A stretch of 64,000 bases of DNA, from assembly GCA_002104905.1 (NCBI GenBank), contig MCFE01000249.1, positions 1-64,000 on the forward strand, read 5' to 3'. Position 1 is the stretch's first letter, and each line of letters begins with the position of its first letter. Under the pieces are notes generated by a model. It was given only the letters and a program-made list of their open reading frames with translations. It made no database searches and was not told the DNA's origin. Source of the stretch: Basidiobolus meristosporus CBS 931.73. Taxonomy: Eukaryota; Fungi; Basidiobolomycota. Positions 1 to 40,793 of the stretch are shown here, piece after piece. Position numbers and translations under genes: made by a program.

Positions 1-1265
1 TTGCTTTGTATCTTTCATTTGTACAATCAGCCTTGTATTTTGTCTTGAAGACCCATCTGCATCCAATTAATTTTTGGTTGATTGGTAATTTGACCAAGTC
101 CCAAGTTTGATTTTCCATCAGGGCCTGATATTCCTCAGTCATTGCGGATCTCCAAAACTTCATCTGAGGGCTATTTAGGGCCTCTTCTACAGTCTGGGGT
201 TCATCAACATGGACTGAATAGGCATAGGCCAAGTTTGTACCCTCATTGATATAGTAATTTGGGCTATTTCTTGTCTGATTGGATCTCCAGGCATTTGATA
301 CAGGAATGATCACTTCTGGGATGTTTCTGGGGACTGATTCTGGCTGAACCATGGTTTTAGAGTCTTCTGGAGTGAAAAAATTCTCATTGTTTTGCTCTGA
401 TTCAATCCTGACAACTGGTGGATTTGGGATCAGATTTTTGTTACCATCTGATGTCATTTTTTGTGAAAATTTTGAATTTTCATCAAACAACACGTCCCTG
501 GACTTGATCAGCTTCTTTGCTTTGGGATTGTAGAGTTTGTATGCTTTACTCTGATTGCAGTAGCCCAAAAATATGCATTTTACACTTTTTGGCTCAGATT
601 TTGACTGATTTCCAGGCAGTTTCTTGGCATATGCTGAACACACAAATATTCTCAGATGCTCTGCACTTGGTCTGTGTCCATACCATGCCTCAAATGGAGT
701 ATAATCACAAAGTATTCTGTTATAACTCCTATTCTTAAGATATACAGCAGTGGCAACTGATTCTGCCCAAAAATCATATGATAATTTTTGATCATGGATC
801 ATAGATCTTGCCATATCAATTATTGATCTGTTAGCATGTTCTGCTACCCCATTTTGCTGTGGGGAGTATGGTACAGTAGTCTCTTGCTTTATCCCATGAA
901 TTTTGCAGAAGTTGATGAAGAGTTTTGAGGTATATTCTCCACCATTGTCAGAGCATACTTTCTTGAATTTTTTCATCAGTTTCTCTCTCCACCATGGCTT
1001 TAAACTCCCTGAACTTAGACAGAGCTTCCTCCTTTCCCTCCATCAAGTAGGCCCATGTGTATCTTGTATAATCATCAATAAAGTGACTAAATACTTCATC
1101 CCGCCTAAGGATAAATTTTGCATAGGTTCACACAGATCTGAGTGAATTAGAACTAATTTTTTCTTAGTTTTGATTAAACCAGAGCTCTTGAACAGTTGTC
1201 TGGCTTGTTTCCCATATATGCAGGCTTCACAGTGCTCCAAACTAGCTGGGGGATCAATTTTTACT
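1..1265 (-). mobile_element. Ty1/copia internal fragment (integrase through start of RT), inverted; continues off the left edge
   Basis: Reverse complement matches about 2190-3451 of the plus-strand element (roughly 93-95% in two 60-bp samples). ORF 1043..1240 (-) reads HCEACIYGKQARQLFKSSGLIKTKKKLVLIHSDLCEPM. Confidence 0.93.
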
Positions 1266-4200
1266 TACAGAATTGCCCTGCTGGTAGATGAGATGGAATC
1301 TGTGGGTGTACCAACTACTGATGAGGATGTGATAGTAACCATCCTGAATAGCCTGACAGACAAGTTTCAGGGCCTGGTATCAGCCCTAGAGTCCAGAACT
1401 GAAGATTTGACCTTAAATTACGTATATGGAAGGCTCCTGGATGAAGAATTAACAAAATCAAGCGCCAATAAGAAGGAAGAAGAAAATGCTTTAATAAGCA
1501 ATGATAACCAACAAAGGAGGTACCCAAGACCCTACAAAGGCAACAGCAACCTGTTTTGTAACTACTGCAAAAGGAAAGGACACACATCAGACCAGTGTCT
1601 CCAAAAGAAAGATAATCAGCAAAAGAAGCCTGAATATGAAAATGCTGCAACAACTGAAGATAGACTATCCATATCTGCACTAAGTATGACCACAAACAAG
1701 GATTCTCAGATGTGGTATATTGACTCTGGAGCATCTCAGCACTTTACCCACCATAAAGAACTGTTTACCCAATATCAAGAAATTTCAACTAAGAAGGTTT
1801 TCATGGGTGATGATAGAACACTTGATGTAATGGGAGAAGGAAATATCCAAGTAAACTTAAGAAGCAGTGAAGGAAGCCATACACTGACCTTTAAAGAAGT
1901 ACTCTATGTACCAGAAATAGCCAAGAACCTACTCTCTGTAAGCAAGGCCACAGCAGAAGGACTCAGTTTCAGTTTTGACAATTCTGGATGCAGGATCACT
2001 GATCAAAATGGTGCCATATTGCTTTGGGCATCAGAGATCAGAATCTATACAAGTTGACTTACATTCCATCATATTTGGAGGCCAATAAAAGTAACTTAAA
2101 TGAAGAAACACCAATGCTTTGGCACAGGAGATTTGGGCACATCAATTTTGATTATTTGCGTAAAATGATCAAAGATCAGATAATTTCTGGAGTGAAAATT
2201 GATCCCCCAGCTAATTTGGAGCACTGTGAAGCCTGCATATATGGGAGACAAGCCAGAAAATCATTCAAGAGCTCTGGGTTAATCAAAACTAAGAAAAAAT
2301 TAGATCTAATTCACTCAGATCTGTGTGGACCTATGCAAAGTTTATCCTTAGGCAGGATGAAGTATTTAATCACTTTTATTGATGATTATACAAGATACAC
2401 ATGGGTCTACTTCATGGAGCAAAAGGAAGAAGCTCTGTCTAAATTCAGGGAGTTCAAAGCCATGGTGGAGAGAGAAACTGGTGAAAAAATCAAGAAAATG
2501 TGCTCTGACAATGGTGGAGAATATACCTCAAAACTCTTCATCCACTTCTGCAAAATTCATAGGATAAAGCAAGAGACTACTGTACCATACTCCCCACAGC
2601 AAAATGGAGTAGCTGAACAAGCTAACAGATCAATAATTGATGTGGCAAGATCTATGATCCATGATCAAAAATTATCCTATGATTTTTGGGCGGAATCAGT
2701 TGCCACTGTTGTATATCTTAAAAATAGGAGTTATAACAGAATACTTTGTGATTATACTCCATTTGAAGCATGGTATGGATACAGACCAAGTGCGGAACAT
2801 CTAAGAATATTTGGGTGTACAGCATATGCTAAAAAACTGGCCGGAAATCTGTCAAAATACAAGCCAAAAAGTGTAAAATGCATATTTTTGGGCTGCTGCA
2901 ATGAGAGTAAGGCATACAGACTCTACAATACCAAAGCAAAGAAGCTGATCAAGTTCAGGGATGTGTTGTTTGATGAAATTCAAAATTTTCACAAAAAATG
3001 ACATCAGATGATGATGAAAATTTGATCTCAAGTCCACCAATTGTCAGGATTGAATCAGAGCAAAACAATGAAACTTTTTTCACTCCAGAGGACTCTACAA
3101 CCATGGTTCAGCCAGAATCAGTGCCCAGGAATATCCCAGAGGTGATCATTCCAGTATCAAATGCCTGGAGATCCAATCAGACCAGAAATAGCCCAAATTA
3201 CTTTATCAATGAGGGTACAAACTTAGCCTATTCCTATTCAGTCCATATTGATGAGCCCCAGACTGTAAAAGAGGCCCTAAATAGCCCTCAGACAAAGTTT
3301 TGGAGATCTGCAATGACTGAGGAATATCAGGCCCTAATGAAAAAAAACTTAGGACTTAGTCAAATTACAAATCAACCAAAATCAATTGGATGCAGATGGG
3401 TCTTCAAGACAAAATACAAGGCTGATGGTACAATTGAGAGATACAAAGCAAGACTTGTAGCCAAAGGATACCCTCAAACAAAAGGACTTGACTATACTGA
3501 GACCTTTGCACCGGTGACCAAGTTTAATTCCATCAGATTAATCTTGGCTATTGAAGACAAATATAAGTTTTTTATTCATCAAATGGATGTAAAAACTACA
3601 TTTTTGAATGGAGAACTTGATGAGGACATGTGTATGGACTAGCCTGATGGGTTTGTTGACCAAGATAACCCCCATTTGGTCTGCAAGCTTAAAAAGTCAT
3701 TATATGGTCTCAAACAATCACCAAGAGCCTGGAATTGCAAGATAGATTCTTATTTGGAATCTTTGAGTTTCAAAAGAAGTAATGCTGACTATAGTATATA
3801 CTATAAGCCAGATAGAGCAAATCCAGTTCTATTAGCTCTATATGTGGATGATCTTATTATAGCCCCAATAACCTAGAAACATTGGAAGAGACTAAATCCA
3901 GCCTATCTAAGGAGTTCAAGATGTCTGATTTAGGAGAACTTAGTTACTACTTAGGGATTAAGTTCTCCATAAACAGAAGTACCCAGACTATTACCCTAAG
4001 CCAATCCAAGTATATTCAAGATATACTAAAGAAGTACAAAATGGAAGACTGTAAACCGGCAGCTACCCCAATGGAGACAAACCTTAACTTGGTCAAAACT
4101 CAACCAAATCAAGAGAGCTTAATGCCATCTGAAAGCCCTGACTTTCCTTATCAATTTATGGTCGGCAGTCTGATGTATATCATGCTTAGAACACGTCCAG

Positions 4201-4817
4201 ATATCTCTTATTCAGTGGGAGGTGTCAGCCAACATAATCAGAACTATGGATCTGATCATATTGCAGCAGTCAAGTGGATTTTTAGATACCTAAAAGGAAC
4301 TGCTGATATTTGCTTAAGATACACTTATAAGGACTCAGAACAAGATCTTGTGGGATACTCTGATGCAGATTGGGGACAAAATTTAGAAGACAGAAGATCC
4401 ACCACAGGATACACCTTTCTTTACTATAAAGGAGCAATTTCATGGAATTCAAGAAAGCAACCAACCATAGCACTTTCCACCACAGAGGCAGAGTATATGG
4501 CAGCCTGTGAAGCTACAAAAGAAGTAATTTGGTTAAGAAAGCTGCTTACAGATTTAGGCCTTTGTCAAAAAATGCCTATTACTTTATTTCAAGATAATCA
4601 AGGATGTATACAATTAGGTAGAAATCCAACTTTTCATGCTAGAACCAAGCACATAGATATTAGGCATCATTTCATACATGAAGCTATAGAGAATAACTTA
4701 GTTAGCTTAGTTTACTGTCCTACAGATGAAATGATTGCAGACATATTTACCAAACCATTAGCTAGAGACAAGTTTGAATATCTTAGGTCAAAATTAGGAC
4801 TAGTCAGTATGAACATT

Positions 4818-4831
4818 AAGCTGAGTGGGAG
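4818..4831 (+). other. Polypurine tract of the copia element
   Basis: Purine-rich AAGCTGAGTGGGAG directly precedes the TG of the 3' LTR. Confidence 0.7.
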
Positions 4832-5180
4832 TGTTGTAAAAGTTTGTATTTCCACCTAAATATTCACCTAACTTGGTCACTTAGATCATTACCTTCAAAT
4901 CCTAGAGAATACTGACCAAATTCCTTGTTGGGATTTACTTAGAATATTTTCACCAAAATACCAGGTTCCCAGAACATAAAAATTCTCGAAGTTGTCCAAA
5001 CAGCCCCAAACTTTGCACACATGCTCTTGGGACCTTCCTTAGCCTATTCTATGTGTTTGTAATGCCAAGATCAGGTAAAAGTATAAATACTACTTTTACA
5101 TTCAATAAATCATTAAGTGAAAACCATATTATCTACTTGTTCTCCCAATCACTTCCAATATCTCCAAGACTCTTACAACA
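4832..5180 (+). repeat. 3' LTR (LTR1, 349 bp)
   Basis: TGTTGTAA...TTACAACA termini, internal TATAAATA and AATAAA, follows RNase H and PPT; homologous to the LTRs at 8673, 9638 and 10046. Confidence 0.93.
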
Positions 5181-5939
5181 AAAGCAAGCTGTTGTCCATC
5201 TACTCTTCTGCTGCTGTAAGTAATAGGGTTTGGTTAGGAAGCAGTCAACTTTGCATTATTTTTTGGTGGCATATATATGGGAGTAAGTCAGTCCAAAGGA
5301 GAAATTTCGGTACATATGCATGTGTATGTGGTGTCAAAATTCTACAATGCTTACTATGGTAGGTCATCATCAAATCTGGCATCCATGTAAGTGCAATGTC
5401 TCAAATAAAAGACTGGCGTAAATTCATATGAATGTTGACAAAAAAGTGATATAATAGAGTTACATTGCTCAGTGTCAAACTGTTTACCCTATGAAGAAGG
5501 CTACATTAATTCAATGCCATAAGAGAAGAGAAAAAAGACCATGTGGCTATTATAGCAAGCCTCTCAGCCATGAAGCATACAGACAGAATAGGAAGCAATA
5601 CAAAGATCACAGGCAGTGTTTTGCCACACAAGCTGTATTTTATCACTCAGCAATCACTATTCTATGAACAATATCTTGCTAGCCACTTGATACTTCTAAA
5701 ACAGCACCTAGCTGTACTTGTGACCTTGCACAAACTGAGTCAGGTGAGTTTGTGGCACCATTAGGCTCACCTCAGCATTCTGAATATGGCATGCAGAATG
5801 ATAGCTTTGAAGAAGAAAGCTCACTCATTGTGAGCCTATCTCCCCCAACAAAAGTACCCTGTATGAGCCTGCCAAAATCCCAATCTGTAATTAAACAACA
5901 ATCACAGAAAGTGCCACAGATACTTTCTGGAGCCAAGTG

Positions 5940-7620
5940 AGCCTGGTAATCCGCCTACTGGTGAATGATGTGATATTGTGGCTAGAGAAGTGGCATGTTT
6001 CCACAAATATCAGTGATGGGGCTTTGAGGATATATTACTACTTCTTGCAAAAATCACTCTGGGATGCAACTTACCATGTACATGATACAAATGGACAGCT
6101 GTCATGTGACTGGCAACATATGACCCAGAGACCATGCTGCTACCAGCATGTGTCAACAGTTGCATGACATTCATATCAAAGAATGCTACCATTACACAGT
6201 GTCCAACTTGTCAGGAATCCACCACCATAGGAGGAAAACACTGTTCACACTCTGGATATTTTCCATTAATATCCCATTTAAAGAAGCTTATGCAGTCCAA
6301 CAAATATTGTGAAGCTATCAAGTACAGCAGTCAGTATCAATCAAGTGCAAATATTTCCAATATTTTGATGGTAAATATCATCAACAACTAAGAAGCAAGG
6401 CCTACCTTGAAGGTATATATGACCATGCCTTTGCCTTGGCACTTAATGGATTCACATTAAACAGGTACTCAACCAGCAGATTCTACTGGCCACTGATTCT
6501 CATCAAGCTGAATCTGCTGCCTATTATACAGTATCAATGCAGAAATCTGATGGTAGTCTAAATGGTATCTGGGCCTAAATAACCATCCAACCTAGACAGC
6601 TACCTGTATCCATTGCTTGATGAATTTTGTATGCTTTCCACCATGATACAACTAAATGGCTGTCATATCAAAGTGCATATTATTATCTGCATAGGAGATA
6701 CATCAGCCATCAGCAAGATGGCTGGCTTTTCTAGGCACAATTGATGGCATTGCTGTCAAATTAGTGCAATTCTGGGGATTTACTCAACAATTCACACACA
6801 TTGTTATGATCCATATATCATCACTAGGAACATCATCTTCCCATGGAGAGAACATACAGAAGTCAGTATGCAATTGCAGCAAAGTTGGCAAGCTATAAGC
6901 TGTTGGCTGGAATATAGATTCAATCAGAAACTGAAGATACTTAAGATAGAGTGTATCTGCTGGAGCAAAAGCTTTCCAATGGGAGCAATGCATTTGCTCT
7001 CAGCAATATCCCTATTCTAATGACCAAGTTGCAAATGGGGCATTTCAAGCTGAATGGGCCCTTTGAGATGCCAGAAGAATTTGAAAGAATTGGCAAGATA
7101 TTACAGTGTATCTGCTACCCAAATTACTTCTCACAGGTTCCAATCAATATTCATATGAATATGCAACAATACAAATGCAAGGACTGAATGAAGTGGATGT
7201 GTACTTATCCAAGTGGCCTTCTAAAGCCATCTCTACCAAGAGTACATGGGAAGCCTTGGGAGTTATACATTGACATTGAAGGAATATTTATTCAGAAGTG
7301 GATCAACAATGTCAACTTGATGCAACTAAAGCTTTTATGCAAGGAGTTTTGATGGGATTTGAGTGGCTATACTACATGCATAAAGCTGAACATATATATC
7401 TCTGCTATTACTGTATCCATTCTCTACTGCATCTTGCTTGGAGTGTAGAAAATGTTGGGACTTGCTTCACCTTTTGGGGGCTTTCTATTGAGTGGATGTG
7501 TGGGATGAGAGGAAGACAAGTCAAGTTGCAGGTACTACCATATCCCAATCTCATCAAGAATATTGCTGTCTAGTCCATCATGAATGTGATGAGTTGGCAC
7601 ATGAAGCACAGCTAGGAAGA
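5940..7620 (+). mobile_element. Decayed CACTA/EnSpm-type transposase (Transposase_21/tnp2-like) pseudogene; boundaries approximate
   Basis: Fragmented motifs in expected order: CVNSCMTF..CPTCQE, YFPLISHLKKL, FALALNGF..WPLILIKLNL..GPK*PSNLDSYLYPLLDEF, GDTSAISKMAGFSRHN, IHSLLHLA..VG..FTFWGLSIEWMCG. Many stops; no TIRs identified. Confidence 0.8.
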
Positions 7621-8552
7621 GTTGGAAAGTACTGAGGACAGATGTGCTCATGGAGACACCTATGCCCTTGGCATTAAGAAGCTAGGAAGCCCTAATGAGT
7701 GGGTAACCAGTCAAGTAATGCAAAGTTGGGCCAGGCACAACAAGCAACTAATTTTTAGTAAGGCAACTTTACCAAAGTATTCCAGGTTTCTCTTGGTCAC
7801 AAGCAAGTTTCTAAACCACTCAATATGGAATTCACACAAATACAAGCCAGAGTGCACCTATAAGGGGGATTAGAATCCAGCTGGGAGAAGGAATATATTG
7901 ATAAATACTAAGAAGTTCTTTGTGGATATTCAGGTGGTATTCATGGTAAAAGTGGTGGCAACTGAGCATATGTTTGTAAGATATATATGTGACCAGCAAT
8001 ACAAGATATATGGCAACATTGCAAGTATCACACTAAAAAGCTAAAAAGTTGAGGTGATAGAAGTCTGTTAATTACAATGGGTGTGTGTGTATGTAGAGGT
8101 TAGTAAGCAGGAGGCCATAGTTTTTTTGATCCATACTATGTGTGGAATACCCAAGGTAGTAGTGGGTAAGCAAATAAAGTGGGGTGATGCTACAGTGGAT
8201 TATATGGATGGTGCAGGGGAGGTAGAAAAGCAAGTACCATTTGGTAGATTGGTATGGTAGCATAATACAGAACTAGCTGTAGGCTGCTGTACTGCTGCTA
8301 TAATGCCAATGAAGATTTGTAATGAGGCCATAAGTACACCATCAAGTTTCTTGCCATATATGGCTCTTAAACACCATCTGGTTTTTTACTATACTTGGCA
8401 GTAAAATCAGCAAAATACTGTCACAATCCTGCTGTAAGATTGTGTGGAGAGTCAATAATTCCAAGCTACTGGCATTATGACAGATGCATTGCAGGATCCT
8501 GATGGCTGATCTGGATTGGATCCACCTTCAAGACCAAGTCATCATTCAAAAG

Positions 8553-9228
8553 GGAAGTGAGTGGGAGAACAAGTAGCCTGTGTGGTACTCTACTTAATGA
8601 ATCAGTGAACTTATAAGTGATATTTATACTTTTACATGATTTTAGCAGAGCAAACATGCAGAATACATTAGGTGTTGTAAGAGTCTTGGAGATATTGGAA
8701 GTGATTGGGTGAACAAGTAGATTTTGTGATTTTCACTTAATGATTTATTGAATGTAAAAGTAGTATTTATACTTTTACCTGGTCTTGGCATTACAAACAC
8801 GTAGAATAGGTTAAGAAAGGTCCAAGAACATGTGTGCAAAGCTTGGGCTGTTTGGACAACTTTGAGAATTTTCATGTTCTGGGTATCTGGTATTTTGGTG
8901 AAAATATTCTAAGTTAATCCAACAAGGAATTTGGTCAGTATTCTCTAGGATTTGAAGGTGATGATCTAAGTGACTAAGTTAGGTGAATATTTAGGTGGAA
9001 ATACAAATTTTACAACATTAGGAAGGTCCCAAGAGTCTGTGTGCAAAGTTTGGATCTGATTGGACAACTTTTAGAAACTACATGTTCTGGTTGCCTGATG
9101 TTTTTGTGAGAATCTTTGAAGTAAGTCTTAACAAGGAGTTTGGGCAGAGCTTTCTAAGCTCTTTTAGGTCATGATCTGAGTGACCAAGCTTGGTGGTTAC
9201 TTAGGAGTAATTACAGATCCTTTCAACA
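8553..9228 (-). repeat. Older, diverged LTR of the same family, interrupted by a younger solo LTR
   Basis: 8553-8672 and 9023-9228 are colinear with the LTR consensus on either side of the insertion. One end reads TGTTGAAAG on the minus strand; the other end is not recognisable. Confidence 0.75.
8673..9017 (-). mobile_element. Solo LTR (LTR2, 345 bp) with perfect 5-bp target-site duplication TTAGG
   Basis: TGTTGTAA..TACAACA termini; TTAGG at 8668-8672 and 9018-9022; roughly 93% identical to LTR1. Confidence 0.92.
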
Positions 9229-9637
9229 CAAAATTCAAGCTTTTTTGGGACAATACCTCCCTTTCTGAAGCACCAGTGTGATGAGTGTCCTCTCCTTTTG
9301 CAGAAGCTAAACACCAGGTTTTGTCTTCTAATGCACTCCAGGTATCCTTTGCTGCTTTGGCTCTGGAGCATTTGACTAGCAGTATGTCTTTGACATTAAG
9401 ACAGATACAGTGAAAACCACTTTGTTCTTTCTTCTGTTACTATGAGTCTGTCTCCTTCACCTCTAAGAGGGCACTCTCTTCCCATGACTATCTCCCAGAG
9501 GTATCTTTCCTATTGAGGTATTTTATCTTCACCTTTCAGACATGGTAATTAGATCCTTGCAACTCTTCAGCAAAGAAAGCATCCCAGTAATAGTAGTAAT
9601 ATGCATTTGAGAGAGTGACAGCTTAGGCATCATAGCT
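9229..9637 (-). mobile_element. Internally deleted copia remnant: degenerate PBS plus gag fragments
   Basis: Minus strand gives EELQGSNYHV*KVKIKYL, KAAKDTWSALED and a knuckle-like FCKRRGHSSHWC. AGCTATGATGCC immediately after LTR3 resembles the GGTTATGAGCCC half-tRNAiMet PBS type (8/12). Confidence 0.7.
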
Positions 9638-9980
9638 TGTTGTAAGAATCTTGGAGATATTGGAAGTGATTGGGAGGACAAGTAGATTTTGTGGTTCTCA
9701 CTTAATGATTTATTGAATGTAAAAGCAGTATTTATGCTTTAACACAGTATTGGCAAAATAAACATGTAAAGTATGTTTGGTAGAGTTGCAAGAGCATTTA
9801 TGCAAATTCTGAGGCTATTTTGATAGCTCTGAGATTTTTCATGCCCTGGGTACCGGGTATTTTGGTGAGATATTCAGAGTCCTAATAAGGAAATTGGGCA
9901 GTATTCTCTAGGACTTGTAAGCTATTATCTAAGCCACTAAGCTAGGTTAGTATTTAGGTGTGATTATAAAATTTAAAACA
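9638..9980 (-). repeat. LTR3, probable 5' LTR of the deleted minus-strand copia
   Basis: Homologous to LTR1/2; flanks TAGCT/ATATA are not a TSD; followed on the minus strand by PBS-like and gag sequence. Confidence 0.85.
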
Positions 9981-10045
9981 ATATACACTTATGCCCATAC
10001 AACCCTATTCTAGTGAACTAAAAACACAATGAGTGCTACAAAAGC

Positions 10046-10390
10046 TATGGTAAATTTGTAATTACACCCAAGTAATTGCTTGGCTAATTTACCTATATAA
10101 CAGTCTACAAATGTTAAGGAATCTGGGGCAAGTTCCTTGTTGAGATTTACTTTGCATACTTCACCAAAATATCTGGCACACCGGACATAAAAAGTCTCAG
10201 AGCTGTCTAAACAGCCCCGAGCTTTTCTCACATGTTCTTGCAACCTTCCTAAAAGTATTGTACATGCTTTTTTTGCTAGACCGTGTAAAAGTGTAAATAC
10301 TACTTTTGCATGCCATGAATCATAAAGTGAAAATCCCTTGATCAACTTGCTCTCCCGATCACATTCAATACTTCCAAAACTCTTACAACA
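10046..10390 (+). mobile_element. Diverged solo LTR (LTR4)
   Basis: Ends TTACAACA, degenerate start TATGGTAA; flanks AAAGC (10041-10045) and AAAGT (10391-10395) are a 4/5 TSD. Confidence 0.8.
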
Positions 10391-10669
10391 AAAGTAACTC
10401 CAGTAGATCACTACACCTCCCCAAAGCGGCATCATACTACCAATATATACAACAAGTGCGCAAATCCACAAAACGCTGTCTCCATAGAAGAAATGAAGAC
10501 AGGCTTAAAGCGGGATATTAAAGTTCGAGGAGTACACAAAGGCAGCTGTGACAAAAACAAAGAAGTAGCTTGAGCTAACAAAGGAACATATAAGATCATC
10601 ATGCTTTATTAAAGTAAAGATACAAGATAGGTAAGCTATTAATCCTGGTGCTAGAAAATGCTACAATAC

Positions 10670-11554
10670 CTATCTACGACGAGCAATGGTGGCAGTAATA
10701 TATCCTGCGGGGTCACTCACCGGTTGAAAAATGGTCATATCTTTGCCTTCGTTCATGAGCCGGAATGGCTTCAGGTTCACGCTGAGGTAGTGCTTGTTCG
10801 GTAGGGCATAGCTGATCTCCACAACATCCCCGTGGTTCGCCAACACCCGCTCTCCCATCTTGTACATGGTGGCTTGCACCGAGGCTGAGTCGTCAGTGGC
10901 GAAGGTGCTCAGGGTGATCTCTCGGACACCTGCACTGATCTGACTGAACGGGATCTCAGCGATCCTTGACGTGTTCAGGTCGTAAGTCCATCTGGCATCC
11001 ACACTGGTCGAGAAGATACGGTCATGCGCATCCTGGAGGGTGGTGTACTCGCATCGGTGGAAGTTGGTGAAGTTCGAGCCAGTGGACTTCAGCACAAGCA
11101 GGTCCTTCATACGCGACTCGATGCTCACTTGACCATCACGGCCAACTGTCAGCTCGACTCGTCTGGTGTCCTCCCCATCCCGGTAGAACGAATGGGGGTG
11201 ATGTTGGTCATCAATGGAGATACGCGACCAGCGATGTTGGATGATCTTCACATACACCCGCTCAACATGGGAGTACCTGTTGATGAAATGCTGGCCGATC
11301 TCATGACCAAATAGTTCGATCACCTCAACATTGTCGGACTTCTTGGCAAGGACATAGATGGTGTTCTTCACCGTGTCAGTGGGGACGATCACCGAGTTGT
11401 CTGCCTCGGTGTAAGACACCTCGAAATCCCCATCGAGCAGGACTTGACATGTGAGCTCGACAACATCATGCCAGTCCTTGGTATGGCGGATCACCTTGGT
11501 CAGACGGACATCAGTCTTGCCGTAGGCTTGCTTCTTCAGGTAGGCGCTGCTCAT
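10670..11554 (-). CDS. Urate oxidase (uricase), paralogue A copy 1, 294 aa, intronless
   Basis: YGK, PTDTVKNT, VLKSTGSNFTNF..EYTTL..DR, SVQATMY and LPNKHY motifs. TATATATAA about 55 nt upstream of MSSAY; AATAAA about 60 nt after the stop. Confidence 0.96.
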   Translation of the reverse strand: MSSAYLKKQAYGKTDVRLTKVIRHTKDWHDVVELTCQVLLDGDFEVSYTEADNSVIVPTDTVKNTIYVLAKKSDNVEVIELFGHEIGQHFINRYSHVERVYVKIIQHRWSRISIDDQHHPHSFYRDGEDTRRVELTVGRDGQVSIESRMKDLLVLKSTGSNFTNFHRCEYTTLQDAHDRIFSTSVDARWTYDLNTSRIAEIPFSQISAGVREITLSTFATDDSASVQATMYKMGERVLANHGDVVEISYALPNKHYLSVNLKPFRLMNEGKDMTIFQPVSDPAGYITATIARRR

Positions 11555-12024
11555 GTTGCTCAGTTCTCTGGCTGATTGTTTACCTCTCTGGATGAGACAC
11601 CCGCACATTATATATATCCACCTCGGCCCACAGCAAGATCTCATCATCTACATCTCGCGTAGCATAACCTCAGCCAGAGTACCTGTCGTGTCTGCCAAAT
11701 CTGGCAATCATGGATTGCTTGAAAATCAGTTTGACATCCATTACCCATTATATCCAAATGAGGCAGCATTACCAATCAACCCTTTGATTTAGAGTTGGGT
11801 TGAGGTGCCAGGTCGTGCAGTGGAGTGGAGTATAGTGGAGTGTAGTGTGATGTACAAGCTTGGTCACCTACAGTCCCCTGTCATCTGGAGGGCACCACTA
11901 CCAGGTGATCCCCATATCCTTGGTGCATGCAAGAGCTTTCACACATTCAATCTGCACAGATTATCTGCGATCCTGAGTGCTGATATATAAGTCGAGGTGC
12001 AGGCTCACCAGAAGTCTCATCAAC
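11555..12024. promoter_or_regulatory. Bidirectional promoter between uricase A1 and B1
   Basis: Outward-facing TATA boxes near 11608-11617 (-) and 11984-11990 (+), AGATAA (GATA-type) on the minus strand at 11961-11966, CCAAT near 11773, GTGGA/GTGTA pentamer tract. Confidence 0.7.
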
Positions 12025-12915
12025 ATGACCTCCATTGCCCAAGTTCAACGTCAAGCCTACGGCAAAGCCAACGTCAGAGTCACGAAGGCAATCCGACACT
12101 CCCCCGAGTGGAACGACATTGTCGAGCTCACCTGCCAGGTGCTCCTCGAGGGTGACTTCGATGAGGCCTACACCAGGGCGGACAACTCCAAGATCGTCCC
12201 AACCGATACTGTGAAGAATACCTGCTTCATCGTCGCCAAACGGTCGGATCATGTGCAGACCATCGAGCGGTACGGATACGACCTTGGCAAGCACTTCATC
12301 AACCGATACGATCATGTGACCCATGTCCATGTCCATATTGTGCAAGAGCGCTGGTCCAGAATCCACGTCAATGGCGAGCCTCACCCTCACTCCTTCTATC
12401 GCGATGGGTCCGAGATCAGACAAACCTGGCTGACTGTTACCCCCAACAGTGTCAGCATCAAGTCGGGTCTTGATGGTCTGCTTGTCCTGAAGACCACCGG
12501 CTCGTCCTTCACCAACTTCCACCATTGCGAGAACACCACTCTCCAGGATGCTGATGATCGCATATTCTCTACCACTGTGAAGGCCCACTACAACATCGAC
12601 ACCTCGGCCGGAGTGGAGAACATCCCATTTGATCGGATCTTCGATGGAGTGCGCAAGACCACCCTCGATGTATTCGCCCACGACGATTCAGCCTCGGTGC
12701 AAGCAACCATGTACCGTATGGCCAACCTGATCCTGAAACGGTTCCCTGAGGTGAAGGATGTGTACTATGCACTCCCCAACACCCACTACTTTACCGCGAA
12801 CCTGGCCCCCTTCGGCCTCCCCAACTCAGGTGAAGAGATGACTACCTTCTCTCCCATCACCGACTTCTCTGGCCTCATTACCGCCACCATTGGCCGTACT
12901 GGCAATAAGATCTAA
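12025..12915 (+). CDS. Urate oxidase (uricase), paralogue B copy 1, 296 aa, intronless
   Basis: YGK, PTDTVKNT, VLKTTGSSFTNF..TTL..DR, SVQATMY and LPNTHYF motifs; C-terminus GNKI. Confidence 0.96.
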   Translation: MTSIAQVQRQAYGKANVRVTKAIRHSPEWNDIVELTCQVLLEGDFDEAYTRADNSKIVPTDTVKNTCFIVAKRSDHVQTIERYGYDLGKHFINRYDHVTHVHVHIVQERWSRIHVNGEPHPHSFYRDGSEIRQTWLTVTPNSVSIKSGLDGLLVLKTTGSSFTNFHHCENTTLQDADDRIFSTTVKAHYNIDTSAGVENIPFDRIFDGVRKTTLDVFAHDDSASVQATMYRMANLILKRFPEVKDVYYALPNTHYFTANLAPFGLPNSGEEMTTFSPITDFSGLITATIGRTGNKI

Positions 12916-13735
12916 ACAATAGTACAAGCTCACATTTTTACATGTGATCTACCATACACCTGGACTACAATTCGCGTACCTATGCATTTTATTCACCGCA
13001 TACAAATACCTTTTCATACGAATAAAATAAAAAACGTGGTACAAATATGCGAGCTTGTTGTTACTCTATCTCTGTAGTGCCTAACGCTTACATCGTTTAG
13101 ACGACCTACTATCAAATAGCCTTCTAAACTCGTTTAGCTGGTCGTCTATCTATTTTAATGACTTAATAAGGGCGCAAACACATCAGGGAACTTCTTTTAA
13201 GGGCAATTATGGGACTGTTCTAGAATCCTGTCAACCAGCAAACACAATATTTCTGGTGTCAACTCTATGGTTCCAAGGAGGCGCCATAAGCTTCAGTCAT
13301 GTAAATACAATCAGCTTCTTCACTGTGGAATTACATGTACCCATTTATTGCCCCTTTCGGACCACATTGACGACTCTCCTCTATAGCCGCTATGAGGTAT
13401 GTAATGCAAAATGCTTGCCGACCGAATTAGAAAACCGACGTAAATAAATGATGAGGTCCACATTTGAAATTATCAGGATTTTAATTATTTGGACCGCATA
13501 AAAAAGACCTGGAATCTCTCAAGTGTCCTGGTTTTTCCAACACAACTGCAAATCCCTTGCTTTCAATCATTTATAAACGGGCCTTACTAACTCCGAAGGA
13601 TTGTTAAATCTCGCTTGCTGCTTTTGCACATCGGATGGTCTGGGTAGAGAAACTGCACGGAAACTCAACCTTGAAACCTACGATATGAGGTAGACCAAGT
13701 TTAGCAAGCTAAACGCGACTGACATTGCTTCTGAA

Positions 13736-14080
13736 TCACCTCCTCACCAGCCGAACCCATACAAGGTTGCAAAAACTTCTATGCGAAAGCATCTTTGAGA
13801 GAGAAACAATCCGAACTATAAGCATTGGCCTCACTGATACCCAAGATCCCCCATATCTCAATAGATATGACATCATGGCAAGATTATTAGCAGCATCTAC
13901 TGAACCTAAAAGCACAATGAATGGAACCCATTCCATTGTTTCTGCTACCTTAGCCCACTGTATATTTACCATTTCACTATCATCCCCTACAAAAGCTCTC
14001 CATCTGGCAAGTCCTGTGGCTTTATATGCCTTTACCTCGTGATCACGGTAGATTCTCTCGTTGCTTGTTACCTTTTTCAT
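13736..14080 (-). CDS. Unassigned ORF (about 114 aa from MKKVTS) in the spacer between the uricase pairs
   Basis: Open frame with protein-like composition (GLARWRAFVG..MEWVPFIVLLG); no family recognised; may be spurious or a gene relic. Confidence 0.25.
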   Translation of the reverse strand: MKKVTSNERIYRDHEVKAYKATGLARWRAFVGDDSEMVNIQWAKVAETMEWVPFIVLLGSVDAANNLAMMSYLLRYGGSWVSVRPMLIVRIVSLSKMLSHRSFCNLVWVRLVRR

Positions 14081-14439
14081 AGTGTAGTGAGTGCCGTACA
14101 AGTTATCAGCACTAGTATCGATGCCGGTCGATCTAGGTGTATTACAGTCAAAACGGAGCGGCAAAAGACGTCTGCCTTTCTTACATTAAATACGCGTATA
14201 TAAGCATCAGATGTTTACTGGTAGAGAGCATGATCTTGAGGTCTTTAGGCAAGGTTAATGACATGACAAATTACCAAAATAACAATTTCCGAAGATAAAT
14301 AATAAATGTCAATTGCCCAGTAAAAACAATCGTGGTTTATTTGAGTCCTTACTTACGCGGGAATAGAATATGGGAATTAATTCAATGCTGAGACCCATTG
14401 GCTGATCAAAGGCCAACTTTTTCAACCGCTAATCTACGA

Positions 14440-15324
14440 CTATCTGCGACGAGCAATGGTGGCAGTAATATATCCTGCGGGGTCACTCACCGGTTGGAAA
14501 ATGGTCATATCTTTGCCTTCGTTCATGAGCCGGAATGGCTTCAGGTTCACGCTGAGGTAGTGCTTGTTCGGTAGGGCATAGCTGATCTCCACAACATCCC
14601 CGTGGTTCGCCAACACCCGCTCTCCCATCTTGTACATGGTGGCTTGCACCGAGGCTGAGTCGTCAGTGGCGAAGGTGCTCAGGGTGATCTCTCGGATACC
14701 TGCACTGATCTGACTGAACGGGATCTCAGCGATCCTTGACGTGTTCAGGTCGTAGGTCCATCTGGCGTCCACACTGGTCGAGAAGATACGGTCATGCGCA
14801 TCCTGGAGGGTGGTGTACTCGCATCGGTGGAAGTTGGTGAAGTTCGAGCCAGTGGACTTCAGCACAAGCAGGTCTTTCATACGCGACTCGATGCTCACTT
14901 GACCATCACGGCCAATTGTCAGCTCGACTCGTCTGGTGTCCTCCCCATCCCGGTAGAACGAGTGGGGGTGGTGTTGGTCATCGATGGAGATACGCGACCA
15001 GCGATGTTGGATGATCTTCACATACACCCGCTCAACATGGGAGTACCTGTTGATGAAATGCTGGCCGATCTCATGACCAAATAGCTCGATCACCTCAACA
15101 TTGTCGGACTTCTTGGCAAGGACATAGATGGTGTTCTTCACCGTGTCGGTGGGGACGATCACCGAGTTGTCTGCCTCGGTGTAAGACACCTCGAAATCCC
15201 CATCGAGCAGGACTTGACATGTGAGCTCGACAACATCATGCCAGTCCTTGGTATGGCGGATCACCTTGGTCAGACGGACATCAGTCTTGCCGTAGGCTTG
15301 CTTCTTCAGGTAGGCGCGACTCAT
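14440..15324 (-). CDS. Urate oxidase, paralogue A copy 2, 294 aa
   Basis: 14 nt and 3 aa differences from A1 by manual alignment. Confidence 0.96.
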   Translation of the reverse strand: MSRAYLKKQAYGKTDVRLTKVIRHTKDWHDVVELTCQVLLDGDFEVSYTEADNSVIVPTDTVKNTIYVLAKKSDNVEVIELFGHEIGQHFINRYSHVERVYVKIIQHRWSRISIDDQHHPHSFYRDGEDTRRVELTIGRDGQVSIESRMKDLLVLKSTGSNFTNFHRCEYTTLQDAHDRIFSTSVDARWTYDLNTSRIAEIPFSQISAGIREITLSTFATDDSASVQATMYKMGERVLANHGDVVEISYALPNKHYLSVNLKPFRLMNEGKDMTIFQPVSDPAGYITATIARRR

Positions 15325-15809
15325 GTTGTTCAGTTCTCTGGCTGCTTGTTTACCTCTCTGGATGAGACACCCGCACATTATATATATCCACCTCGGCCCA
15401 CAGCAAGATCTCATCATCTACATCTCGCGTAGCATAACCTCAGCCAGAGTACCTGTCGTGTCTGCCAAATCTGGCAATCATGGATTGCTTGAAAATCAGT
15501 TTGACATCCATTACCCATTATATCCAAATGAGGCAGCATTACCAATCAACCCTTTGATTTAGAGTTGGGTTGAGGTGCCAGGTCGTGCAGTGGAGTGGAG
15601 TATAGTGGAGTGTAGTGTAGTGTAGTGTAGTGTAGTGTACAAGCTTGGTCACCTACAGTCCCCTGTCATCTGGAGGGCACCACTACCAGGTGGTTTCCAT
15701 ATCCTTGGTGCATGCAAGAGCTTTCACACATTCAATCTGCACAGATTATCTGCGATCCTGAGTGCTGATATATAAGTCGAGGTGCAGGCTCACCAGAAGT
15801 CTCATCAAC
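15325..15809. promoter_or_regulatory. Bidirectional promoter between uricase A2 and B2
   Basis: Near-identical to 11555-12024 with an expanded (GTGTA)n tract. Confidence 0.7.
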
Positions 15810-16700
15810 ATGACCTCCATTGCCCAAGTTCAACGTCAAGCCTACGGCAAAGCCAACGTCAGAGTCACGAAGGCAATCCGACACTCCTCCGAGTGGAACG
15901 ACATTGTCGAGCTCACCTGCCAGGTGCTCCTCGAGGGTGACTTCGATGAGGCCTACACCAGGGCGGACAACTCCAAGATCGTCCCAACCGATACTGTGAA
16001 GAATACCTGCTTCATCGTCGCCAAACGGTCGGATCATGTGCAGACCATCGAGCGGTACGGATACGACCTTGGCAAGCACTTCATCAACCGATACGATCAT
16101 GTGACCCATGTCCATGTCCATATTGTGCAAGAGCGCTGGTCCAGAATCCACGTCAATGGCGAGCCTCACCCTCACTCCTTCTATCGCGACGGGTCCGAGA
16201 TCAGACAAACCTGGCTGACTGTTACCCCCAACAGTGTCAGCATCAAGTCCGGCCTTGATGGTCTGCTTGTCCTGAAGACCACCGGCTCGTCCTTCACCAA
16301 CTTCCACCATTGCGAGAACACCACTCTCCAGGATGCTGATGATCGCATATTCTCCACCACCGTGAAGGCCCACTACAACATCGACACCTCGGCCGGAGTG
16401 GAGAACATCCCATTTGATCGGATCTTCGATGGAGTGCGCAAGACCACCCTCGATGTATTCGCCCACGACGATTCAGCCTCGGTGCAAGCAACCATGTACC
16501 GTATGGCCAACCTGATCCTGAAACGGTTCCCTGAGGTGAAGGATGTGTACTATGCACTCCCCAACACCCACTACTTTACCGCGAACCTGGCCCCCTTCGG
16601 CCTCCCCAACTCAGGTGAAGAGATGACTATCTTCTCTCCCATCACCGACTTCTCTGGCCACATTACCGCCACCATTGGCCGTACTGGCAATAAGATCTAA
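15810..16700 (+). CDS. Urate oxidase, paralogue B copy 2, 296 aa
   Basis: 8 nt and 3 aa differences from B1 (P/S, T/I, L/H). Confidence 0.96.
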   Translation: MTSIAQVQRQAYGKANVRVTKAIRHSSEWNDIVELTCQVLLEGDFDEAYTRADNSKIVPTDTVKNTCFIVAKRSDHVQTIERYGYDLGKHFINRYDHVTHVHVHIVQERWSRIHVNGEPHPHSFYRDGSEIRQTWLTVTPNSVSIKSGLDGLLVLKTTGSSFTNFHHCENTTLQDADDRIFSTTVKAHYNIDTSAGVENIPFDRIFDGVRKTTLDVFAHDDSASVQATMYRMANLILKRFPEVKDVYYALPNTHYFTANLAPFGLPNSGEEMTIFSPITDFSGHITATIGRTGNKI

Positions 16701-17377
16701 ATAACCACATATGTGTACCCACGCCTCCTCCTACATTAACGGCACGCTAAGATCACCACTTTGTAAACGTCAGGTTACTGCTGCTGATGATGATTTTAGT
16801 AGTTGAATAAATCTCATAAAACCCTTTTGCCAGTATCAGGAAACGTGACATTATTGGTAAAAAGGAATCCGATTTAAGGGCAGTGACGAAGGACTAGCCG
16901 GACGTCGATTCGGCAGCAGTGTACAGAATGGTTAAGCAACATAGATTTGGGAAACCAACTATTGCACCGAGTTAAACATTCGTCTGACCAATTCAATTTG
17001 CCATGTTAACACATCTTGACTAAATCAAATCGGAATCATAATTCGTTGTGCAACGCCGACATAAGTTTCTTCAGAAGGTAGAGCACTTCTCGTACCAAAG
17101 CCCCACAAGCATGAACTCATCCAATGGCCATTGCACCCACCAACCTCGATGGCAGCACCCCCGCGAGGGCGGTACCAGGAGCGACGCAACCAGAAGCACC
17201 ACAGTACCAAGGTTGAATCGGAACCAACTCGACCCAACTCCAATTAAATCCCTCTCATCATCCAGGAGATTAAAAAAATTCCTGATCGGATGGGATGGGA
17301 CTTTTTTTTAGACGCTTGATTAAGAGGACAGTAAACGGGGCATCCCACGAGCTACGTTCAAGTCAAACACACCACCG

Positions 17378-18696: not shown

Positions 18697-20491
18697 ATGG
18701 CTTCAGTCGAAGAGAAACCAGTGTGGGATCAGGAGGATTTGGAAGAGCTTGGCCCGGAGATTCTGAAGGCCAGCGGCGAAGAAATCAGAAATAGAACTAG
18801 ACTACTCGACAATGATATTAAGGTACCGCCTGTGCCAGTACACCTGGGCGTAGCACGTTCGAGTTCTCTCGAGGGGCTAATCTCGGTTTCTGTGAAACTA
18901 TGCTGACCTGGTTTTGAAAATAGGTGATGCGCAGTGAGCAGATGCGCCTCCAACACGAGCAGGCTGCCATGACCGAGAGGATCAGAGAAAACAAAGAGAA
19001 AATCAAAATGAACAAGCAGCTGCCTTACCTGGTCGGCAATGTGGTTGAGGTAAGGTTTCTAACGAGATGCTCCCTAGCCAAGTGAAGACTCACCTTCCCC
19101 TCAGATCATGGATATGGATCCCAACGACGATCCGGAAGAAGAAGGGGCCAATATTGATCTGGATGCCCACCGTCGCGGAAAATGTGCGGTTGTGAAGACC
19201 TCCACCCGACAGGTATGAGGATTCTCGACGAGTCGTGACCGGCTTCTTCTGTTTAACGTACTAATCTGTACTCCAGACCATCTTTCTTCCGCTCATTGGT
19301 CTGGTTGAGCATGACAAGCTGAAACCCGGTGACTTGATTGGAATGAACAAGGATAGTTATCTTGTGTTGGACACACTGCCAGCTGAGTAAGTGCCATACT
19401 TCTCTATAAATGCTCTTGATGCCCATGCTTACGCAGGCTCCAGGTATGATTCCCGTGTCAAAGCCATGGAGGTCGACGAGAAGCCAACGGAGGATTACAC
19501 TGATATCGGTGGATTGGACAAGCAGATTGAAGAGCTGGTTGAAGCCATCGTGCTTCCCATGACCCACGCCGAAAGATTCAAAAACCTCGGGATCAAGCCA
19601 CCTAAGGGTAAGTGAAACGCCGGCTGATCTTGGCGGAGCTGCCATTAATCTCGGTCCGTATAGGTGTCTTGATGTATGGCCCCCCAGGTACTGGAAAGAC
19701 TCTGCTTGCCAGAGCTTGTGCCGCCCAGACCAACTCAACATATCTCAAACTCGCCGGTCCCCAGCTTGTGCAGGTAAGCAGCCATGGACTTCGAGTGTGG
19801 GTAGAGCGGCTTTTAAGTGATTCGAAATAGATGTTCATCGGTGACGGCGCGAAGCTTGTTCGGGACGCCTTCGAGCTTGCCAAGGAGAAGGCCCCATCAA
19901 TTCATCTTCATCGATGAGTTGGATGCGGTTGGTACCAAGCGTTTCGACAGCGAGAAGAGCGGAGATCGTGAAGTCCAAAGAACCATGTTGGAGTTACTAA
20001 ATCAATTAGATGGGTTCAGCAGTGACGATAGAATCAAGGTATGTTGCGCCCAGTCCAGTCACACAAACCCACACAACACTAACCCCTGGTCCGCAGGTTA
20101 TCGCAGCCACAAATCGTATCGATATCCTCGACCCTGCCCTCTTACGTTCCGGCCGTCTGGACAGAAAGATCGAGTTCCCTCTGCCAACCGAGGAGGCTCG
20201 TGCCCGTATTCTACAGATCCATTCTCGTAAAATGACCGTCGGGCCCAACGTCAACTTTGACGAGTTGGCTCGCTGCTGTGATGAATTCAACGGGGCGCAA
20301 TGCAAGGCCGTCTGCGTTGAGGCCGGTATGCTTGCGTTACGTCGCGGTGCTAGTGAACTTAGTCATGAGGACTTCATGGATGGTAAGTGAAGAGCGCGCC
20401 CTGCACCGCCCCGACTCGTGCTAACTCGTTGTCATTAGGTATCCAAGAGGTGATGGCCAAGAAGAAGACTTCGTTGAAATACTTTGCTTAA
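18697..20491 (+). CDS. RPT5: 26S proteasome AAA ATPase Rpt5/PSMC3 (multi-exon; apparent +1 indel near 19901)
   Basis: [96 protein letters not shown], ends KYFA. Confidence 0.95.
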
Positions 20492-20723: not shown

Positions 20724-21161
20724 GCAGATCTTCGTCATGAGCCCAATCCCACCCTGAGGTTGTTTGGCATTGATGGAATTTGTCAGGGGCACATAATGTA
20801 TAGGGATTAGGAATAATATCAGAAAAAAAAAAGAAAAAAACTGCCAGGAAAACATGGGGTTGTCGGCAGGGCAAAACATAGGATTGTGGAATCTTTGGGA
20901 TGCGGCATATCGAATGGAATCGATAATCTTCCGCTACTGACGTCTGGGCCAGATTTAGTCACGGGTAAAAAGTTCCTAGCGGAAAAGATTTCAATAAAAG
21001 CGGTATTCCGCCAATTCATCACGATCAAATCTGTGTGCGGTACCGTATATCGACTTGGGTGGTGTTCACTTCACTCACTTGGGTTCCCTTAAAATAGCTG
21101 CCTCATACTGCTGGTTTTCTAGAAAGCCCTCCAATTCCTTGTCCAGTAGATTTGGTGTAGC

Positions 21162-39500: not shown

Positions 39501-40793
39501 TAGCAACAGCGATATAACGTAGAATCTCGTTATCGGGCACAAATCCGAATGCACATCCAGGATCAAAACCTCTGTCAGAGCCCACTTGAATAACGACCAC
39601 GGGTGAATTGGCGCTAGCGGATTTACGCAAGATATCTCTAGTATAATCATCAATACTGGAATTTATCACTCCGTCGGTAATAATCACAAGAGATGGCGCA
39701 AACTCTCTAGGGAGCAATCCAAGCCCAAACAAACCTGCCTGAAGACTATATGAGATGTGACCGTTGTTTGGACCATGTAGCGATAAAACACTCTCGGTTA
39801 TATGCGCGCTGTTACTGAACTCTACTGCGCCTGATTCGTGACCTTTTTGTCGAGAATTTCTCTTTTCACTGGCATATACATCGCTATTTTGCATTCGATG
39901 CCGAAGGACTATGAGCTCTTCCTGCAATTTGTCGAATTCATAGCGTAACTTCTCGGCAATGGCGCCGATATTCTGTCGAGTAACTGCTAAGCCTTGCACC
40001 AGAACTCTCATAGAGGGGAAATTCTTCAACACATTTGACTCAAATTGATTCTCGGTGAAATGAGTGCATTCAGCGATAACGCTTATGAGAATTTCTGGCT
40101 TCACCTAGATAGCATCAAAGTTATTTCTCAGTCTGTAGGAAGATAGAGAATGTTTAGATAGCTACTTCAATGGACTCTTCGGCACCATTTGACTTGAAAG
40201 CGAAAGGGCAAGATATTCCTTCAATGGAGCGGCAAAGCCTGCAAGAAAGAAAGGAGTTTAAACACCCTGTCACCTGAAAAAATGACGCACTTATATTTAC
40301 GTTTCATATATCTGGTCCAACAGGATGTGAGATCGGTAGGGATTGAGATTCGCGACTGAACCGCTAATGTCCACAACAAATACAAGGCGATGCTTGGTAG
40401 AAACCGTGCATATCTTTGTATGAGGGGTAAGTTTATATAAGGGACCAGTAGTCGGTTCGGGGGCTGCGATGGTTTTTGTTCTTGCGGTGGCCTTGTACGG
40501 TTCAGATCGGAAGTTATCTCCAGGACTTGAACATTCTCATCCTACCAAATTATCAGCGCCAGTTGAAACAGATGCACGAGGTATGTGGGAAATACCTGCA
40601 ATTCTTCGAGGTTTAGAGGTCTGAAAAGGCGAGATAAAAGCCATTGTTCGTGCTCGTTTCTATTAAACAGCAGCGGCTCTTTCAAGAGTAAAGTCAAACT
40701 CTTGACTTCTACACTCTACAGTTATACAAGTTACCAAATGAAACAAAGCAACCGGGGAAAGGATCACAATAGTTTACATACTTCTAAATCCAT
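30584..40793 (-). CDS. SZT2: SZT2-like KICSTOR scaffold, very large multi-exon gene (about 3000 aa or more)
   Basis: N-terminal exons (RLVFVVDISGS, SLVIITDGV, VIQVGS..FGFVPDNEILRYIAVATSGKF, YREY-like TRYRDY, MRLRQGFS) and C-terminal LLHFCRTPLLF and VNSFVHDFHL resemble animal SZT2; size and exon chain are consistent. Confidence 0.85.

Follow-up and report, generated by a model that had tools for sequence, protein, structure and literature searches.

In this work, we analyzed a stretch of 64,000 nucleotides from the genome of the fungus Basidiobolus meristosporus CBS 931.73 (hereafter, the window), which opens contig MCFE01000249.1 (114,615 nt) and shares its numbering with the public record. 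The window carries four genes for uricase (urate oxidase) of two types, termed here A and B, which are arranged as two head-to-head A/B pairs, or cassettes. A scan for open reading frames (ORFs) recovered the four genes as uninterrupted single exons, all of them annotated as uricase in the public record. Start codons were placed at the first in-frame methionine agreeing with relatives and with public gene models, which yields proteins of 294 and 296 amino acids; the ORFs themselves are longer than the coding sequences and run upstream to 11647 and 11977. The locus comprises the following features.

10670-11554, minus strand: uricase A1, A-type, 294 amino acids, intronless; C-terminus ...ATIARRR; PF01014 E value 5.5e-69
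11555-12024, no strand: divergent intergenic region 1, 470 bp, between A1 and B1
12025-12915, plus strand: uricase B1, B-type, 296 amino acids, intronless; C-terminus ...GRTGNKI; PF01014 E value 1.1e-64
12920-14439, no strand: spacer between the cassettes, 1,520 bp, unique, GC content 0.40
14440-15324, minus strand: uricase A2, A-type, 294 amino acids; public model P0002
15325-15809, no strand: divergent intergenic region 2, 485 bp, between A2 and B2
15810-16700, plus strand: uricase B2, B-type, 296 amino acids

The A1 protein is identical to public gene model P0001, and B1 corresponds to a gene already called in the public annotation. Two stretches of each of the four proteins match the Uricase domain (PF01014), with E values of 5.5e-69 to 1.1e-64 and 217 to 231 bits for a score cut-off of 25 bits. 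A and B share approximately 57% identity at the protein level and 68% at the DNA level, and both align end to end with the solved uricase of Aspergillus flavus (E values of 2.7e-78 for A1 and 5e-69 for B1). In A. flavus numbering, the catalytic motifs YGK (Lys10), PTDT (Thr57/Asp58), DRIFST (Arg176), SVQATMY (Gln228), and PN(K/T)HY (Asn254/His256), together with the Phe159 region, fall into register in A and B, and each of these numbered residues, Phe159 included, is identical in A1 and B1. Across 164 other fungal uricases, 81 alignment columns are conserved at 90% or more; A matches 80 of these columns and B 76, with no departure at a catalytic residue. The alignments and ORFs bear out the description given in the initial annotation, i.e., two distinct intact paralogues that keep the active-site motifs and share divergent intergenic DNA, in a unit that occurs twice. 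As judged from these features, the four genes are intact uricases of the ordinary kind.

Comparison of the two cassettes

Self-comparison of the window aligned positions 10670-12919 with 14440-16704 at 98.0% identity over approximately 2,250 bp, with 30 substitutions, 26 of them transitions, and one gap. A1 and A2 differ by 14 nt and 3 amino acids (synonymous divergence [dS], 0.057; ratio of nonsynonymous to synonymous divergence [dN/dS], 0.08), and B1 and B2 differ by 8 nt and 3 amino acids (dS, 0.025; dN/dS, 0.18). Intergenic region 2 departs from region 1 by seven substitutions and a 15-nt insertion. The latter, which is the sole indel between the cassettes, is the expansion of a GTAGT/GTGGA-type microsatellite (11838 in the first copy, 15609-15623 in the second) and provides a usable copy-specific marker. 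Of the 22 differences in coding sequence, 16 are synonymous, for an expectation of 23% (binomial P = 1e-6), and 6 are nonsynonymous. Older uricase comparisons gave dN/dS values of 0.02 to 0.11. By these measures, A and B are under strong purifying selection in both copies. Mutation driven by CpG sites was rejected as the source of the differences, since CpG is involved in only 7 of the 30.

The limits of the repeat are unusually placed. Identity between the cassettes drops from 98% to chance level at the A stop codon, 0 nt beyond it (10670/14440), and on the right side it ends 4 nt past the B stop codon (12919/16704). In local alignments scored against shuffled sequences, the 3' flanks of the cassettes (600 nt each) resembled neither one another nor the flanks of a uricase pair on contig MCFE01000043 nor the spacers of a large uricase array on contig MCFE01000037 (z-scores of −1.0 to 1.9, for a positive control of 46). 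Similarly, the spacer at 12920-14439 matched neither the outer flanks nor the rest of the window nor the other uricase loci that were retrieved, so that its origin as a repeat or mobile element was also rejected. An ORF within the spacer (13736-14164) has no Pfam match, and the public annotation places no gene there. After a simple tandem duplication, the copies would be expected to stay homologous into one flank or the other, as far as the breakpoint. The window cassettes share no flank sequence on either side, and plain tandem duplication does not fit. The notion that the pair was duplicated in tandem thus holds insofar as the cassette is present twice, but nothing is shared outside the block that runs from stop codon to stop codon.

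Uricase loci elsewhere in Basidiobolus

The genome of B. meristosporus contains at least six uricase loci, the window included. Over these loci, we counted 12 A and 12 B copies that are full-length or nearly so (approximately 24 genes), a few of which carry frameshifts or truncations, in addition to fragments. A and B always alternate in a 1:1 ratio, and the paralogous loci of the same assembly match the window uricases at 80 to 87%. The initial annotation had treated the array in the window as the amplification, which on these counts is only one part of it. Its premise that fungi typically carry a single urate oxidase agrees with the matches listed, in which each other fungal species is represented by a single uricase entry or a few of them. 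The loci outside the window, including a syntenic one in Basidiobolus ranarum, are as follows.

MCFE01000043: a single head-to-head pair, with a PALP-domain gene on one side and an adenosine/adenine deaminase (A_deaminase) gene on the other
MCFE01000037, cluster I: five head-to-head pairs and two fragments over approximately 17.6 kb, with some copies frameshifted or truncated
MCFE01000037, cluster II: B-A-B-A-B-A, six intact genes on one strand (4327-12305 of the retrieved locus)
MCFE01000705: one uricase pair
MCFE01000121: a degenerate uricase pair
JASJQH010006929 of B. ranarum (GCA_040143965.1): one head-to-head pair in a PALP ... A_deaminase neighborhood, syntenic with MCFE01000043

Cluster II lies approximately 10 kb from cluster I, beyond a CRM1 gene, and adjoins two genes for inosine-uridine nucleoside hydrolases (IU_nuc_hydro) and one for an amino-acid transporter. 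B. ranarum additionally carries a second head-to-head pair, as well as further copies on short contigs. Two observations on gene models and neighbors of these loci may be added. In cluster II, the public model P0010 (302 amino acids) is chimeric and has a B gene spliced to an A gene. In addition, a 463-amino-acid BPSS1860 plus chitin-binding gene adjoins both cluster I (20882-20891 of the retrieved locus, where it runs off the end) and the degenerate pair of MCFE01000121 (14197-15588 of the retrieved locus); this shared neighbor suggests that the latter pair is a decayed segmental copy.

The relationships among these genes were charted in a careful tree of 39 rows, which left out fragments (P0010, P0022, P0113, P0121, P0128, P0143, and four partial array copies) and the long-branched outgroups Phaffia, S. 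pombe, Calcarisporiella, and Actinomortierella. Basidiobolus uricases form a single clade (support, 96/93), within which the B clade (100/100) has a stem of 0.67 and the A clade (91/92) a stem of 0.12. Window genes A1 and A2 (100/99) are sister to the A gene of MCFE01000043 (99/96) and then to the A gene of the syntenic B. ranarum pair (100/99). Likewise, B1 and B2 (100/100) group with the B genes of MCFE01000043 and of the syntenic B. ranarum pair (98/95), the A and B trees being congruent at the level of this syntenic-pair lineage. These groupings place the A/B split before the separation of B. meristosporus and B. ranarum. According to the tree, A and B are therefore ancient paralogues of Basidiobolus origin, and the window cassettes fall in the same lineage as the pair that is flanked, in both species, by the PALP-domain and adenosine/adenine deaminase genes. 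Horizontal transfer of the uricases was rejected, as the genes nest among fungal uricases.

These data also bear on whether the second cassette of the window is an assembly artefact or an uncollapsed haplotype. The 98% identity of the copies and the location of the array 10.7 to 16.7 kb from the contig end, beside a repeat block, are what such an error could produce. However, the assembly was built from PacBio reads (PMC7466969), the copies differ by a 15-nt indel and at 30 sites, the pattern of these differences bears the mark of selection, and the cassettes are separated by 1.5 kb of unique spacer and bounded by unrelated outer flanks, unlike a haplotig. Moreover, similar arrays occur at other loci and in a second, independently assembled species. 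An artefact is thus very improbable.

Probable concerted evolution of the uricase genes

Cluster I provides a second view of how identity is distributed along these arrays. Its coding sequences are 96 to 99% identical (dS, 0.04 to 0.15), and this identity ends 0 to 1 nt past most A stop codons and 4 to 6 nt past B stop codons; two A matches are exceptions, reaching into the spacer by 38 and 113 nt. Promoters within the cluster align only at 69 to 82% over 60 to 190 nt, and two of three spacer comparisons revealed no similarity. Cluster I therefore combines near-identical coding sequences with far more diverged adjacent noncoding DNA, a pattern taken here as a sign of gene conversion. Together, the coding-limited identity in cluster I and the stop-bounded block in the window point to concerted evolution. 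The window cassettes may be kept near-identical by gene conversion, or they may have been last homogenized by one long conversion or gap-repair event. Such an event would have been anchored in the A and B coding sequences and would have carried along the promoter between them, so that identity would end at the two stop codons with the promoter included. Conversion would thereby be confined to the DNA that selection keeps alignable. A cDNA-mediated variant of the process is improbable, since the identity stops at the stop codons and not in 3' untranslated regions and since the window block includes the promoter.

The same block could instead stem from a recent, neutral segmental duplication in a duplication-prone genome, with neither conversion nor adaptive value, the locus being a snapshot of gene birth and death. 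Divergence is indeed low and even over coding sequence and promoter (1.6%, 1.5%, and 0.9%), other arrays contain frameshifted and truncated copies, and Basidiobolus genomes are gene rich in comparison with those of relatives (PMC7466969). Nevertheless, this scenario needs each breakpoint to fall within 0 to 4 nt of a stop codon and 1.5 kb of unrelated DNA to have come to lie between the copies. It also sits poorly with the strong bias of the differences toward synonymous sites (P = 1e-6) and with the coding-limited identity of the large array, where promoters are old. We consider neutral duplication improbable as the full account of the array, and concerted evolution under purifying selection to be the better description.

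Base composition varies among the uricase loci. The GC content at third codon positions (GC3) is 0.70 to 0.72 in the window and array copies, 0.48 to 0.57 in the MCFE01000043 copies (8850-10885 of the retrieved locus), and 0.45 to 0.48 in the syntenic pair of B. ranarum (8442-10897 of the locus retrieved from JASJQH010006929). Among the window neighbors, Mot1 has a GC3 of 0.71 and the thiolase gene 0.48. Regional composition or GC-biased conversion could account for these differences, which make dS between these paralogues look more than saturated.

Peroxisomal targeting signals

Fungal uricases commonly end in a type 1 peroxisomal targeting signal (PTS1), defined here as the C-terminal pattern (S/A/C/P/T/G)(K/R/H)(L/M/I). 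A tripeptide of this type closes 141 of the 166 full-length uricases of other fungi (85%), most often SKL (78 proteins) or AKL (36 proteins). All A-type copies in both Basidiobolus species stop a few residues earlier, at ...ATIARR(R/T/Q/GY/GQ); the resulting ends (-RRR in the window; -ARR, -RRT, -RRQ, -RGY, and -RGQ elsewhere) do not fit the pattern. All intact B-type copies keep a basic tail that ends in NKI, as in the window, or in TKI, SKI, NKF, SNF, or NRI, of which only -SKI fits. Two other sources of a peroxisomal signal were rejected. Read-through of the A stop codon would not supply a PTS1, as the following codons read V-L-stop in A1 and S-stop in A2. The N-terminal stretch RLTKVIRHT, which resembles a type 2 signal (PTS2), was dismissed on inspection, since it agrees with the consensus in part only and is located in the first strand, which is conserved. 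A is therefore predicted to be cytosolic unless carried in by B, and B is plausibly, but not certainly, peroxisomal by means of a weak PTS1-like variant. The absence of PTS1 from A, while B retains a weak variant, argues that A and B are not redundant.

One explanation of this asymmetry is that A and B are subunits of a heterotetrameric uricase, in which B, with its weak PTS1, would let A travel piggyback into the peroxisome, and in which the shared promoter and the 1:1 coamplification would balance the subunits. Uricase is a tetramer with active sites between subunits. At least 12 units in two species each hold one A and one B gene, in head-to-head and codirectional arrangements alike; PTS1 is missing from all A copies, and the B proteins retain a basic C-terminal tail whose last residues are (S/N/T)K(I/F). 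In addition, the long stem of the B clade (0.67 versus 0.12 for A) is expected after a change of role. Piggyback import has been documented in yeast for Mdh2, a signal-less protein imported by its PTS1-bearing paralogue (PMC7758625), and for Pnc1 with Gpd1 (PMC5314374), and the process has been reviewed (PMC4680570). However, A and B both keep the full catalytic set, with no complementary loss that would force coassembly. Unequal crossing-over of a two-gene unit would yield the 1:1 alternation anyway, and A could simply be a cytosolic uricase. Our literature search found no heteromeric uricase. On balance, the idea of a heteromer is tentative and the less favored one, although it would, if true, reveal the first heteromeric uricase and a gene-order-enforced balance of subunits in a fungus, with the A/B cassette and its shared promoter as the unit that was amplified and homogenized to exploit reptile urate.

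Promoters and genomic neighborhood

Intergenic region 1 contains TATA-like runs at 11609-11616, i.e., 55 to 62 nt from the A1 ATG, and at 11984-11989, approximately 40 nt from the B1 ATG. The same runs are found in region 2, and this layout recurs at several other uricase loci. In the middle of region 1, a core of 63 nt (11716-11778) matches the MCFE01000043 promoter at 73% identity, even though synonymous sites between the two pairs are saturated; promoters of the large-array lineage share a different core. The window uricase promoters contain no UaY-type CGG-N6-CCG site, and no GATA site is consistent across uricase promoters. Coregulation of A and B from the shared intergenic region is plausible.

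To the right of the array, the neighbors are genes for EXOSC1/CSL4, a proteasome ATPase, Mot1, and a thiolase, and to the left lies a block of copia-type retroelement sequence. No gene for purine degradation or uptake was found among the window ORFs of at least 130 amino acids or among called genes within 10 kb. The initial remark that no allantoinase or hydroxyisourate (HIU) hydrolase gene is adjacent likewise stands, as none appeared among the large ORFs of the window. That the window might share the PALP/A_deaminase neighborhood was discarded, because tblastx comparison with the loci of MCFE01000043 and MCFE01000037 cluster I matched only the uricase genes.

Further observations concern the DNA around the array. 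Positions 1-10000 of the window are a copia-type long terminal repeat (LTR) retroelement block, in which gag, integrase, and RVT_2 are spread over several broken ORFs and inside which the contig starts. The observed/expected CpG ratio is 0.05 in this block versus 0.82 to 0.84 in the rest of the window. A dispersed repeat of approximately 350 nt abuts the uricase array on its left (8500-10400) and recurs at 4832-5180. In the coordinates of the retrieved loci, it is also present in cluster II (2803-3141 and 19181-19508), on MCFE01000121 (988-1956, 12106-12457, and 19006-19674), and at locus L010 (5335-5490), and it occurs near other uricase loci and in B. ranarum. This repeat is probably the LTR of a copia-like element; it may simply be abundant, or it may have mediated rearrangements. 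Two long minus-strand ORFs of 975 and 1,213 amino acids (31059-33986 and 36463-40104) have no Pfam domain above threshold, the only hint being a weak DUF7631 match on the former. In B. ranarum, a 520-amino-acid gene with a Thiol_cytolysin domain (PF01289) lies at 484-2105 of JASJQH010006929, approximately 6 kb from the syntenic uricase pair. This domain defines the cholesterol-dependent cytolysin family, which is mostly bacterial, and horizontal acquisition of the gene is possible.

Proposed amplification of urate oxidation in a dung-associated fungus

Reptile excreta are rich in urate, which is their main nitrogen waste. Gecko dung was the source of strain CBS 931.73, whose genome was sequenced with PacBio (PMC7466969); this origin accords with the early guess of a Basidiobolus-like organism living on urate-rich excreta. 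In addition, B. meristosporus is reported to have 16 NAT/NCS2 nucleobase transporters, a count singled out there for a fungus (PMC6308229). We propose, with a probability of about 0.7, that the A/B uricase cassette has been amplified and homogenized by conversion, so as to raise urate oxidation for nitrogen supply, and that A and B are nonredundant. Expansion of the family would increase the capacity to oxidize urate from reptile excreta, and A and B would either act in different compartments or coassemble. Amplified urate-oxidizing capacity on reptile excreta is the most likely functional reading of the sequences, given where the strain was found, how large the family is, the purifying selection on its members, the purine genes beside sister loci, and the 16 NAT/NCS2 transporters. 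Dosage amplification by itself, as originally put forward, leaves unexplained both the loss of the signal in A and the 1:1 retention of two types, which dates back to before the split from B. ranarum.

Several points weigh against this proposal. Frameshifted and truncated copies in the large array indicate that part of the expansion is decaying. The strict 1:1 alternation arises mechanically whenever a two-gene unit is duplicated and is not in itself a sign of selection to keep A and B in balance. The window locus has no neighboring gene of purine catabolism. As for conversion, low dS could partly reflect selection on codon usage (GC3 of approximately 0.70) instead, and the window promoter is as similar between copies as the coding sequence, for which a young duplication with unusual breakpoints is a possible cause. 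Mismatches are in excess toward the outer ends of the block, as fits conversion, but this excess is weak and its test was post hoc (odds ratio, 2.9; P = 0.045).

In textbooks, uricase is a homotetramer encoded by a single gene; the enzyme is also used as a drug (rasburicase and pegloticase). What is unusual in Basidiobolus is not the enzymes, which are ordinary, but the fixed two-type cassette, its amplification and homogenization, and the loss of the peroxisomal signal from only one of the two types. In the literature searched, no paper connected Basidiobolus with uricase or urate oxidase, and none joining the genus with uric acid described the expansion. If the proposal holds, roughly two dozen uricase genes in a reptile-dung fungus would constitute a clear case of niche-driven gene amplification, and the loci would offer a natural source of diverged, probably active uricases. 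Loss of the signal in one member of each pair further raises the questions of where urate is oxidized and of whether a heteromeric uricase exists.

Comparison with known systems

The nearest known system is the fungal peroxisomal urate oxidase of the A. flavus uricase/Aspergillus nidulans uaZ type (PF01014; structures 1R4S, 2IBA, and 4D12). Like the A. flavus enzyme, A and B have approximately 300 amino acids, two uricase (T-fold) domains, and all catalytic motifs. Unlike this type, Basidiobolus uricase comes as two types with 57% identity, in a fixed pair, and from some 24 genes rather than one. Its copies are all intronless, though neighboring genes have introns. In addition, A has lost the C-terminal PTS1, and B ends in the style of -NKI or -NKF rather than -SKL or -AKL.

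Fungal clusters of purine-catabolism genes are resembled only at sister loci, which place A_deaminase beside the pairs of MCFE01000043 and B. ranarum and two IU_nuc_hydro genes beside cluster II. The window locus, in contrast, has exclusively housekeeping neighbors, and its promoters are devoid of the UaY-type site. The likeness to yeast piggyback pairs is an analogy only: a PTS1-type tail is present in one partner and absent from the other, within a family of oligomeric enzymes.

Duplicated globin genes and pairs of yeast ribosomal-protein genes are families that evolve in concert, with identity confined to coding sequence. Basidiobolus uricases are likewise near-identical to within a few nucleotides of their start and stop codons, with diverged flanks and, in the large array, diverged promoters too. 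Unlike in such families, the converted or duplicated block of the window spans two genes and the promoter between them.

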